Part shown: positions 51,323 through 55,933 of the stretch, piece after piece | How positions within the stretch are numbered: position 1 is the first letter of the stretch | How the letters are laid out: each line of letters opens with the position of its first letter | NCBI RefSeq assembly: GCF_000143415.4 | Contig: NW_003314332.1 | Coordinates: forward strand, 744,001-808,000 | Direction: 5' to 3' | Source of the DNA: Selaginella moellendorffii | Taxonomy: Eukaryota; Plantae; Lycopodiophyta | Length of the DNA stretch: 64,000 nt | The notes under the pieces: model-generated | Databases searched by the model: none | Told to the model about the DNA's origin: nothing | What the model saw: the letters and a program-made list of their open reading frames with translations, nothing else | Program-made: the position numbers and the translations under genes

Positions 51323-52487
51323 GTTGGTTCCTGTTTTCAACTCCCTTGCGGATCCTGAATCAGGTTGGCGAGGATGAGTTTGGGTATATGCTGGCCGAGA
51401 TACTCAAGCAGAACAAGGTTGAGGACAGGGGCATGAGGTTCGACCCCCATGCTCGCACGGCCCTCGCCTTCGTTACGCTGAAAGAAGATGGGGAGAGGGA
51501 GTTTATGTTCTACAGGAATCCAAGTGCTGATATGCTTCTCAGGCCTGATGAGCTCGACGAGGAGCTTATTAGCAAGGTGAGTGAGGCATGACTTCAGCTG
51601 GCTGACTATTTTGATGGCTAGGCGTCGGTGCTCCACTATGGGTCCATCAGCCTCATCTCGGAGCCATGCAGATCGGCACACCTGGCAGCCATGGACGTGG
51701 CAAGCAAAGCAGGCGTGCTACTGTCATACGATCCCAATTTGAGGCTGCCACTGTGGCCTTCGGCTGAGGAAGCTCGCAAAGGAATCTTAAGCATATGGGA
51801 CAGGGCCGATCTCATCAAGGTAAATCTAACAATTTCAAGTAAGCAAGTATTACAAGTGTTACAGGTGAGTGAAGAGGAGCTCCAGTTTCTGACTGGCAAA
51901 GATCCATTTTCGGACGAAGCAGCCCTGTCCGTATGGCATTCAAACCTCAAGCTCTTACTCGTAACTGAGGGTCATCGGGGTTGCCGCTACTATACGAGCG
52001 TAAGCAGTTCCGTCCTGGGATCATACACTCATACATGTTTATAACAGGATTTCCACGGGAGAGTGGACGGTATCAAAGTGCAAGCCGTAGACACCACCGG
52101 TGCTGGGGATGCCTTCGTGGGAGGCCTTCTGAGCCAGCTTGTGGGCGATTTGTCGCTCTACAAGGTATGCATATATGTAGCCTCAGGACATGCATGATGT
52201 GTGTGGGCTTTCCAACAGGACGAGCAGAGATTGAGAGCAGCTCTCAAGTTTGCCAATGCATGCGGAGCAATAACGACGACGGAAAGAGGTGCAATCCCTG
52301 CATTGCCTGACAGGGACACGGTGCTGCGGCTCATAGGTACGCTCTTTTTATCATTCCCTGCAGTAACAAACAAATTGACGCAGACGAGATCCCCAAATCT
52401 CGGATGCCCCGGGCGCCTTCGTGGTCCAACATCACGCGCTGGCGACTTGAAGATCACGAGCACGAGGGAGCAGTTCCAGCAGCGTGA
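51101..52487 (+). CDS. FRK: Fructokinase (pfkB family)
   Basis: [40 protein letters not shown] and [10 protein letters not shown]. The last exon is uncertain (stop 52487 or 52521). Confidence 0.95.
51286..51318. repeat. (CT)n microsatellite in an intron
   Basis: Direct observation. Confidence 0.9.
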
Positions 52488-52597
52488 ATCCAATCATATG
52501 ATCACTATGCTCCAATTGTGAATAAACGGAGGATGAATCCCGTATCAAGACTAATTCTTCTTTTCCAATCTGAGTAAAGCACACATATCACAAGAGA

Positions 52598-52843
52598 TCA
52601 CACGAGCCTCGAGTACTCCCAAAGGATCTGGACTAGCCTCCGGAACTCGGCAATAACGAAGTCGAGCCTGTGGCGTCTCCACAGGCAGAAGAAGAGAATG
52701 CAGCCCAGGAGCAGGATGAGACAGACGGCTAGCACCACCGTCCCAACCCAGGCCGCTGTGGACGGGGCAGAGAGGGAGAGGAGAGAGGATCCTGCATTCT
52801 CGAGCCCCGGAAGCTCCCACATGACCATGGCGCTGAAGGACAT
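52598..52843 (-). CDS. Possible small single-pass membrane protein
   Basis: Hydrophobic stretch WVGTVVLAVCLILLLGCILFFCLW followed by RRHR. No recognised homology. Confidence 0.35.
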   Translation of the reverse strand: MSFSAMVMWELPGLENAGSSLLSLSAPSTAAWVGTVVLAVCLILLLGCILFFCLWRRHRLDFVIAEFRRLVQILWEYSRLV

Positions 52844-53160
52844 ATATAATTTTTAGGGCGGGGCGGACATTAGAATCGAACCTTGGCTTGAAATTGAGTG
52901 CCCTGGGTGGACTTTCCTTCCGACTTGTTCACTTTGTAGCTATGGTGGCTTTGTCCAGGAGCTGCTGGGAAATGCCCCAGGCTACCTAGGGTTTGCGCCA
53001 TGCCCAAAGGCGCAGCTCACTTGAGCTGCTACGAGGTAGGTAAAAGATTGATTGCTTCTCTCCTTCGACGAGCCCCTCTTAGATTTGGCATTTTTGTCGT
53101 ATTTCTTCACATCATTCATCCAGTGATTTTTAACTCTAGTTTGATGGCAAGGGATGAGAC

Positions 53161-55108
53161 ATGTCCACTAGGACAAGACACTGGGACTCCCTCCGGGCAA
53201 AGCTCCATGCTGCTTGTTTGCTAGACGAGACGGGTCTCGATCCAAAGTCCCGTGAAGGCTTGCTTGCCAAGGTGAATCCAGATTTCTGACAAACACGGCC
53301 GCGATTCGATATATAATTGTAGCTGGCAGGATTGCTGCTGTTCCAGTGAAATGGAGTGTGGACATACACAAGATACATCTCGGCTGGAAGCACGTAACAG
53401 ATGGAGGCGGCTCAAGAACACAGTGGCTTTTGCGGCTGCCATCAAATCCTCTCTGGCCCATGATCTGCTCGAGGACAAACTTCACGTCGATCCCGTAAAA
53501 GGCAATGACAGTGTTGCTACCGGTGCAGCAGCTCAGGCTTCGATGCCAGTTAAAGCCAAAGGAAGGAAAGGAATGGAAGGCCTTGTGGTCCAGCAAGACA
53601 GAGGTTACATGTCTTGCTTCCAAGATTTTTATGTCGCCTGCCTCAAGGTACTTCACTCGCGTAGCTTTTTTATCATAGCATGGTGCCGCACTCACCCGAA
53701 GCACGTTTTTGTCTTACGCAGCTGCCAGTCGTTCACTTCTTTATTGGAGTTTTCCTGGCTCCAGTTGCTTTGGCCTCGATCTTCACGCCACTCTATCTAT
53801 CGGATGCCAAGGGGCTCAAGCTCGTCGAGTCGCAAGAAGCGGGTTCGTCGTGCGACTCATCCAAGATATGGAGCTGCTTGAATGTTTTTCTCTACTCGTA
53901 CGTACGTATATCAGATGTGGCCATGCTACTTAGTGGCTCTTTGCAGGCTATCCTTGTCAACAACCTTCGGTGGCTCGCCAATCTCTGCAATCTCGCCATT
54001 CTGTCTACTTGTTGCGAATCTTCACACGCTCATGGCTCAGTTCTTGTTTGTGTTTCTGAGTGGTGCCGGTAAGACGGTAGAGATGGCTGAAATTCGGTCT
54101 CGTAGCTCATGTCGTGAGAGGTTGCTGTTTGGTGCAGTTTTCGCTCGTATGTCACAGCCAGCGCATCCCATAAGGTGCTCCAAGAAAGCCATAATAAAAA
54201 ACAATGACTTCGGGACATCAGATGACGAAGATGGCAGATCCAAGTATAAAGGATTCATCTCTCCTGCGCCCTCTTGACTCACTCGTCGTGCGTTTTGTGT
54301 GTCACGCAGAGTCTTTGTTATACGGCTGGTACTGACGGGGCCTCCTCCCTGCGAGCTCGTGGATGCAAAGATACGCCTCACATTTCGCATTTATGTGAGG
54401 CTGCCGTCCGGGTCGATGTTCTGCTCGACACAGGATTTGGACCTGGTGCGTTCAGAAGTACGTACACACGCACATATATACGTCTGGACTTGGGTTACCT
54501 GAGCTTAGTGATCTCATCTAACATTGTCGTCTAAGCGGTGCAGGTTGCATACCTAAGATATGGACTGACAGTACGCCACGTAATAAACTCCAAGAGTCCG
54601 ATTAGCGGGCACACTTTGGACACTCTTGCTCAGGGAGATGCGTCCTTCTCGCTGACGATAATGGGTGTGGAGCGCAGCTCCATGCAGCCCATCTTCCATG
54701 TGGAGGTGAGCCTTGACTTCTCCACACCAGTTTAATCCGAGGCCAAGTGTGGTGTGTGACAGGATTACTTCATATGTGATGGAGACGTGATATGGGATGG
54801 GGAGTACCTCGACTTCGTAGGAGTGAACGACAAGGGCCTGAGAGTACTAGACCATTCCAAGATAGACATGTTGAAACCATTCAAGGTTCTCTCTCTCTTG
54901 ATAGTTTTCACTCCTGAAGAGATTTCCTTCTCAGGTGGCGGGAGTTGTAACACAAGCCATAGCAAGAATGGAAGGCGAAGTTGCAAGACACAAAGCTGAA
55001 GCGGATCTAAAGGAAGAGAAAAACCACGAACCACTTTCGGAATCAGATTGGAAGACAAGCGGTGTGAGAATCAGGAAACTATGGAAAACAATATCTGGTT
55101 CGAAGTAA
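53161..55108 (+). CDS. Inward-rectifier (Kir/IRK) family channel with atypical filter
   Basis: Nine exons: 53161-53271, 53330-53647, 53722-53897, 53947-54068, 54138-54243, 54310-54457, 54544-54705, 54763-54885, 54935-55108. Slide helix FQDFY, M1, FLYSLSLSTTFGGS, M2 ending GAVFARMSQP...CSKKAII, and cytoplasmic LTVRHVINSKSPI...LTIMGVE...DVIWDGEY. Confidence 0.85.
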
Positions 55109-55136
55109 AATAGAAAATAATTTCTAGCAGCCTGGG

Positions 55137-55149
55137 TAGGGTTTGGGCC
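55137..55149. promoter_or_regulatory. Telo-box plus site II motif
   Basis: TAGGGTTT 55137-55144 and TGGGCC 55144-55149. Confidence 0.5.
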
Positions 55150-55537
55150 ATGGGGAAGAGCAGGAAGCGGCAAGCGGCAAAGCGGATGATGGACATTGAC
55201 CATGATCAAGGTAAACAAACATCCATCTATTTCTTCTCCATTGTTCCGATGCTGCTCCTGAATAGAGGCACAGGGCATGGATGTAGACGAGCCCAAATCC
55301 ACATCCAACCCACCCAATGGGTAGGTGTTATTTGTTTTCTTGAAGCTGCCCAATGCTCTCTTGCACGGCAGGCTGTCCAAGGAATCCAAATTGATCGCAA
55401 AGCGGCGTCGTGCCGTGAATGTACGCAAGAAGGCGGCGGCTGACAAGGCGCTGGCGATGCTGGAGAAGAAACAGCAAAAGGCTCAGACGGATCTGGCAAA
55501 GGTGTGTCGCAAGAATCTACTCAAGAAGCTGTACTAG
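55150..55537 (+). CDS. Small basic protein (possible ribosome-biogenesis/Alb1-like)
   Basis: Three exons with GT-AG introns: MGKSRKR...MDVDEP...NVRKKAAADKALA...LKKLY. Confidence 0.65.
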
Positions 55538-55561
55538 GTAGTGGAAAGAGGTAGGGTTGCA

Positions 55562-55933
55562 ATGGAGAGTCATCATGCCCGGCTGCTAGCCTTCGATTTT
55601 GTGAGGAAACAGGTTGGCCGTCGTGTAGAGATGGTGGGGGTGGCGGTGAGCGTGGAGCGCAAGCCCAAGTACGTGCGCTTTGCTGTGGACGACGGCACGG
55701 GCTGCATATCTTGCATCTTGTGGACCAACCAGAGTGGCGCCCCCCAGCAGCAGGCAGCGGCAGACATGGCGCGGCTTGTCACTCTGGGGGGCCTGCTCGC
55801 GGTGCACGGCCGCGTCTCCCGCTACCACCACCACCCGCAGCTCACCGTTTCGTCTCTCCTGCCACAGCCGGATGCCAATGCCGAGGTTTACCACTGGATG
55901 GAGTGTATCAAGCTTGCGCTAGATTGCTATTAG
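55562..55933 (+). CDS. STN1: CST complex subunit STN1 (single OB fold)
   Basis: HARLLAFDF...RVEMVG...RFAVDDGTGCISCILW...DANAEVYHWMECIKLA. Intronless. Confidence 0.9.
   Translation: MESHHARLLAFDFVRKQVGRRVEMVGVAVSVERKPKYVRFAVDDGTGCISCILWTNQSGAPQQQAAADMARLVTLGGLLAVHGRVSRYHHHPQLTVSSLLPQPDANAEVYHWMECIKLALDCY

Follow-up and report, generated by a model that had tools for sequence, protein, structure and literature searches.

Inventories of plant K+ channels in textbooks and reviews list the Shaker channels, the TPK channels and the TPK-derived 'Kir-like' KCO3. The last of these is a one-pore TPK derivative in which the GYG filter is kept (PMC8619664). In the lycophyte Selaginella moellendorffii, six-frame translations were screened for G-Y-G as a completeness check of the channel list (Gomez-Porras et al. 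2012; PMC3410407). Here, a gene was analyzed that lies at positions 53161 to 55108 on the plus strand of a 64,000-nucleotide stretch of S. moellendorffii DNA (contig NW_003314332.1, positions 744,001 to 808,000; this whole stretch is the window, and all coordinates refer to it). Profile comparisons and the predicted fold establish the encoded protein as a Kir/KirBac homologue across the whole channel core, with the residues TTFGGS at the position of the K+ selectivity filter. Because the completeness check relied on G-Y-G, the family to which this gene belongs was missed by the S. moellendorffii survey (PMC3410407), as a preliminary description of the locus had anticipated for surveys based on the GYG motif. 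A literature search identified no paper describing a GYG-less Kir-like streptophyte family.

Database and fold searches used the S. moellendorffii protein SELMODRAFT_123397 (435 amino acids; here P0086), which is 100% identical to residues 45 to 479 of the gene model described below; the full 479-amino-acid model was used in local scripts only. A family profile generated from an alignment of 49 members matched KirBac1.1 with an expectation value (E) of 1.6e-23 (86 bits), and the match covered profile positions 110 to 413 and chain residues 45 to 314, beginning at the slide helix and reaching the end of the cytoplasmic domain. KirBac3.1 was matched at about 1e-18 (71 bits) and animal Kir channels at E values between 6e-9 and 9e-3. 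All 45 of the PDB matches of the profile were Kir or KirBac proteins. In the profile alignment, the slide helix QDFYVACLK was placed on WRDLYYWALK of KirBac1.1. An AlphaFold monomer model built on the family alignment had a mean predicted local distance difference test (pLDDT) score of 81.6, and the 10-residue blocks across the pore helix, the loop and helix M2 all averaged at least 92. Foldseek comparison with the PDB placed KirBac3.1 and KirBac1.1 on top (E of about 5e-23, ∼300 aligned columns, target template modeling [TM] score of 0.67 to 0.84), followed by animal Kir channels at about 1e-18, and the Atlas fold matches were bacterial IRK/IRK_C clusters (TM of 0.75 to 0.86). The family-profile match to KirBac1.1 and the fold match together bear out the full Kir topology (slide helix, M1, pore, M2 and C-domain) that the preliminary description had assigned to the protein.

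Searches with single sequences and short pieces were also performed. Using P0086 alone, tblastn identified a Caballeronia KirBac gene (E value, 2e-9), and the translation of exon 7 alone matched KirBac1.1 (E value, 0.016) and IRK_C (E value, 0.039). When the translations of eight separate exons were submitted to Pfam, a weak IRK_C match for exon 7 was returned and nothing else. The Pfam search with the protein gave no match to the IRK_N domain. A 98-amino-acid read-through piece (exon 4, the in-frame intron 4 and exon 5) identified no Kir channel in the PDB. For residues 140 to 206 of P0086, the best single-sequence PDB match was the bacterial 'Ion transport 2 domain protein' 5cbf, which is not a Kir channel; this match was nonsignificant (E value, 0.64). 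Relatives in other clades of the family pass the IRK_C threshold with 30 to 37 bits, and some family members are automatically named 'Inward rectifier potassium channel C-terminal domain-containing protein' in UniProt.

The TTFGGS codons occupy 53960 to 53977 on the plus strand (residues 207 to 212, T207 to S212), exactly where the replacement of TxGYG had been placed by the preliminary description. A gap-free HMMER alignment set T-T-F-G-G-S on A109-T110-V111-G112-Y113-G114 of KirBac1.1, and the same register was obtained in a separate MAFFT alignment with two plasmid-borne TVGYG KirBac homologues, which were used for alignment only. In both of these separately built alignments, T-F-G-G-S stands in place of the K+ signature T-x-G-Y/F-G, and no fetched family member carried GYG or GFG at the filter position. 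Of the KirBac1.1 residues, the Thr and first Gly of the filter are retained, as are the equivalents of G143, F146 (the gate), R148 and P152; Gly takes the place of the filter Tyr, Ser that of the second Gly and of the pore-helix Glu, and Pro that of Asp. The acidic pore-lining M2 residue associated with polyamine and Mg2+ block (the Kir2.1 D172 position, which we take to correspond to KirBac1.1 I138) is not present, and an invariant Phe is aligned there. Weak rectifiers likewise have no acidic residue at the D172 position.

The rewritten filter is a property of the family. The motif LSLSTTFGG(S/A)P(V/I) was present in about 60 fetched family proteins, and LSLSTTFGG(S/A)P was found in mosses, liverworts, lycophytes, ferns, Ginkgo and conifers. 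An exhaustive HMMER search using the exon 4-intron 4-exon 5 piece returned 65 proteins, and in its best matches, which are representatives of clusters formed at 50% identity, the pore exon was 70 to 85% identical. Conservation within the protein is highest in the pore helix, the loop and M2. Three clades with different loops were distinguished in a tree of family members. Clade A is the land-plant group holding the Selaginella gene (Shimodaira-Hasegawa-like approximate likelihood ratio test support, 98) and has the motif LSLSTTFGGSP. The pore signature of clade B is TTFGG-x-RVEA. In clade C, a sister clade that includes two further Selaginella genes, the pore loop is one residue shorter and reads LSLSTGL-QPEL or -EPEL (P0055, P0057, P0054, P0059 and P0061). 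The clade-A motifs LSLSTTFGG(S/A)P, Q-F-L-F-V-F-L-S-G-A-V-F-A-R-M-S-Q-P and S-M-Q-P-(I/V)-F-H are all present in the studied copy, which retains 128 of 136 columns in which conservation among the other 32 clade-A proteins reaches 94% or more. A Selaginella paralogue, 59% identical to the studied copy, retains 134 of 139 conserved columns. Given this retention and the same motif in orthologues across land plants, the altered filter is not an instance of unconserved decay.

To define the gene, the region from 52800 to 55500 was inspected and candidate exons were joined at GT..AG sites. Nine exons (53161 to 55108) on the plus strand generate a 1,440-nucleotide open frame encoding 479 amino acids and a stop codon, with GT..AG at every intron. 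Transcript evidence was taken from the contigs, not the raw reads, of four public runs from four studies, aligned to positions 52700 to 55700. The eight coding introns were all recovered as GT..AG joints in each of the four runs. Thus, the contigs derive from spliced RNA, and none of the joints listed from them creates a different pore exon. The nine-exon gene, originally spliced by hand from the sequence, is therefore intact, with an open frame, regular introns and joints in four studies, and the RNA check that had been proposed for its junctions found every one of them.

Exon 1 (53161 to 53271; residues 1 to 37) is joined to exon 2 in the contigs and carries the N-terminal motif W-D-S-L-R ... 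L-D-E-T-G-L-D. Based on the gene model and contig joints, exon 2 (53330 to 53647; residues 38 to 143) encodes a basic helix (ARNRWRRLK), the N-terminal strand (GRKGMEG) and the slide helix (53621 to 53647). Helix M1 (about 53728 to 53799), a long turret and the start of the pore helix lie in exon 3 (53722 to 53897; residues 144 to 202, the last codon being split), the helices having been taken from the AlphaFold model. Exon 4 (53947 to 54068), as defined by the model, contig joints and alignments, supplies the end of the pore helix (LSLS), the loop at the filter position and most of M2. The end of M2 follows in exon 5 (54138 to 54243), with the conserved gate phenylalanine F244 (54140 to 54142) and the linker FARMSQP...RCSKKAII. 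The first strands of the cytoplasmic beta-rich domain are encoded by exon 6 (54310 to 54457; gene model, contig joints and AlphaFold), its core by exon 7 (54544 to 54705), in which HVINSKSP forms residues 340 to 347 (54580 to 54603), and its end by exon 8 (54763 to 54885), with the motifs DYF..DGDV.WD and RVLDHSK. Exon 9 (54935 to 55108) contributes a C-terminal helix and a tail with a conserved R-K-L-W-K motif, and ends with the stop codon at 55106 to 55108. All nine exons are on the plus strand.

Upstream of the coding frame, a 5′-leader intron (53036 to 53151, plus strand) was present as a GT..AG joint in all four runs, and the leader exon before it extends to 53035. The spliced leader (52882 to 53160) contains four upstream ATGs with short upstream open reading frames, starting at 52942, 52972, 53000 and 53154, the last of which overlaps the main start at 53161. 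As read from the leader sequence, this arrangement suggests translational control of the main frame. An in-frame stop codon lies at 53155 to 53157 in the spliced leader, so that the long frame cannot start before 53161. SELMODRAFT_123397 begins at M45 (53351), with exon 1 left out. The peptide encoded by this exon is kept in the Selaginella paralogue, Cryptomeria, Marchantia and Ceratopteris, and because of this conservation across land plants the nine-exon model beginning at the first methionine (M1) is the better one, the annotation being N-terminally truncated. At intron 1 (53272 to 53329), loose contig ends in two of the runs (X1 and X7) fit an acceptor at 53323, 7 nucleotides upstream of 53330. 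If this acceptor were used, the reading frame would change beyond residue 37 and run into a stop codon at 53344 to 53346, just before the ATG of M45. It is possible that 53323 is a minor acceptor by which the frame from the first methionine is truncated and a 435-amino-acid isoform starts at M45.

The family is widely distributed among streptophytes. Members were identified in streptophyte algae (Chlorokybus, Klebsormidium, Mesotaenium, Spirogloea and Closterium), liverworts (Marchantia, Riccia and Calypogeia), mosses (Sphagnum, Physcomitrium and Ceratodon), a hornwort (Nothoceros), lycophytes (Selaginella and Diphasiastrum), ferns (Adiantum and Ceratopteris) and gymnosperms (Ginkgo and the conifers Cryptomeria and Taxus). 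Among the named matches, none came from an angiosperm, a chlorophyte or a bacterium, which does not prove absence. A scan of 185,579 prokaryotic genomes (bacterial and archaeal) identified none with the family motifs. The protein searches did not reach chlorophyte, diatom, oomycete or canonical Kir proteins, and an Atlas look-up hints at such relatives. When the gene was compared with Marchantia Mp1g10960, seven of its eight introns fell in the same alignment column and phase, and five exons were of identical length; two introns are shared with a clade-B gene of Klebsormidium. These common positions and phases argue for vertical descent from a streptophyte ancestor. The preliminary description had left the choice between a retained ancestral channel and a horizontally acquired one. 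The span from Chlorokybus to gymnosperms and the common introns favor the former, as does the lack of the family motifs in every bacterial genome scanned; a recent horizontal transfer was ruled out by intron conservation and phyletic spread. A place for the gene in the toolkit of plants with flagellate sperm, also suggested earlier, is not supported because the conifers Cryptomeria and Taxus, which are without swimming sperm, carry well-conserved, short-branched copies.

How the protein may function was assessed from the residues of the pore. NaK and its NaK2K and NaK2CNG variants show that K+ selectivity needs four contiguous sites and that loss of the upper sites gives nonselective cation conduction. 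The Tyr-Gly half of the filter is lost in the plant protein, and on the NaK-variant work nonselective cation conduction would therefore be expected. The protein would assemble as a tetramer with a central pore, gating would be exerted by the cytoplasmic domain at the conserved M2 phenylalanine, and cations would pass without selection for K+, as in NaK and CNG pores and not as in a classical inward-rectifier K+ channel. We give this cation pore close to an even chance of being correct. More broadly, and more tentatively, the family could represent an undescribed class of plant ion channel that has a Kir fold and a TTFGGSP loop, is gated by its cytoplasmic domain, is not K+ selective and is possibly permeable to Ca2+; such a class would go back to the streptophyte ancestor, have split into three clades bearing different loops, and have been kept through gymnosperms and lost in angiosperms.

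Several observations weigh against a conducting Kir-type pore of this kind. In the Pfam check recommended by the preliminary description, neither gathering cut-off was reached: IRK (PF01007) scored 11.8 bits against a cut-off of 22.7, and IRK_C (PF17655) scored 15.2 bits against 22.5, both matches being collinear with the profile. The studied copy has a long terminal branch (0.86 versus a median of 0.23), and its near-invariant M2 Asn is replaced by His. The exact register of the loop is not certain, since a pairwise match to Kir6.2 allows an alternative in which FGG is set on FGG with a two-residue gap, and the K+ signature is present in neither register. Finally, an Ala replaces the hinge Gly and the invariant Phe already described occupies the cavity position (KirBac1.1 I138), and because of these two residues the inner pore is very hydrophobic and might not conduct.

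That last point leads to the strongest of the rival explanations, in which the Kir fold has been kept and ion conduction has not, the protein acting as a sensor, scaffold or modulatory subunit, possibly by coassembly with other family members. GYG is gone in all three clades, the clade-C loop is one residue shorter, Phe is invariant at both the cavity and the gate, and several paralogues per genome would allow hetero-oligomers. However, the pore helix, loop and M2 are the parts under the strongest conservation, as expected with selection on the pore itself, and a nonconducting role is considered unlikely. Next is the view that the protein is still K+ selective by way of an unconventional filter. 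In its favor, the loop is of unchanged length and still has the filter Thr and first Gly, and sites built from carbonyls are independent of side chains; against this, the bracing Tyr/Phe and the second Gly have given way to Gly-Ser-Pro and the pore-helix Glu to Ser, and we know of no characterized K+-selective channel with such a filter sequence. Retained selectivity therefore appears quite improbable. Little more than slight credence is given to a pore for other permeants, such as divalent cations, anions or small solutes: the motif is unlike every characterized filter, which would suit such a role, whereas no ring of basic residues occurs at the clade-A loop, a point that is not decisive. 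A decaying duplicate or annotation artefact whose odd filter reflects drift, to which the long terminal branch and the possible frame-shifting acceptor of intron 1 (loose ends in two runs) might point, is scarcely credible in view of the open frame, the in-frame splice form in four studies, the conserved columns kept and the motif shared with land-plant orthologues, and the pseudogene reading was accordingly ruled out on conservation and in-frame mRNA.

Sequence on either side of the gene was also considered. The next gene, on the plus strand, extends from 55150 to beyond 55933, starts 42 nucleotides past the stop codon and has introns at ∼55209 to 55263 and ∼55320 to 55370. Its product is an OB-fold protein (tRNA_anti-codon OB; E value, 5e-7) with a weak match to Stn1, and contigs span both genes. 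Upstream, an open reading frame at 52201 to 52521 on the plus strand ends with the C-terminal motif of pfkB-family carbohydrate kinases (weak Pfam match; E value, 0.0035) and, judging by this motif, is probably the last exon of an upstream gene. At 52833 to 52881, a CT..AC joint, the type expected of a minus-strand intron, was seen in runs X2 and X3 and not in X1 and X7, in contigs that also carry the plus-strand gene. It may belong to an overlapping antisense or neighboring transcript.

With its deep conservation, its Kir fold and a pore signature of its own, the family would add an uncharacterized conductance or regulator to the electrical toolkit of nonflowering plants. It also offers a natural experiment on what a Kir scaffold does after its K+ filter has been rewritten. 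With single-copy orthologues available in Marchantia (Mp1g10960) and Physcomitrium, this question can be tested directly.

Among known systems, the plant family is closest to KirBac (KirBac1.1, PDB 1p7b and 2wll; KirBac3.1, PDB 1xl4 and others). The two share a collinear N-terminal strand, slide helix, M1, pore helix, M2 and beta-rich cytoplasmic domain, KirBac proteins gave the best profile scores and fold matches, and the G143, F146, R148 and P152 equivalents and the motif H-x-I-D/N-x-x-S-P are common to both. They differ in that KirBac has T-V-G-Y-G where the plant family has T-F-G-G-S followed by P, and a pore-helix Glu where the plant family has Ser; the plant family also has a longer turret, conserved N- and C-terminal extensions and a eukaryotic, intron-rich gene. 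Animal Kir channels (Kir2, Kir3, Kir4, Kir6 and Kir7) belong to the same superfamily and have the same fold, but similarity to them is weaker than to KirBac, and the plant protein lacks GYG/GFG, the acid at the D172 position (Phe instead) and a match to IRK_N. A further lead is the likeness to NaK (TVGDG) and CNG (TIGET-P) channels, in which the lower filter half T-x-G is kept and the upper half replaced, with a Pro after the loop in CNG as in the plant family. These channels are not its close relatives, and the nonsignificant match of the pore segment to 5cbf was the only hint of kinship. The plant 'Kir-like' KCO3/TPK channels resemble it in name and two-helix pore topology only; KCO3 has no Kir cytoplasmic domain and is unrelated to the Selaginella channel family. 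Plant BK/SLO channels occur from green algae to gymnosperms and are absent from the angiosperms examined (bioRxiv 10.1101/2021.06.01.446568). The present family, found in all sampled nonflowering streptophyte lineages with no flowering-plant member found, has the same reported phyletic pattern and would be the second case of it after BK. BK channels belong to another family, whose K+ filter is canonical.
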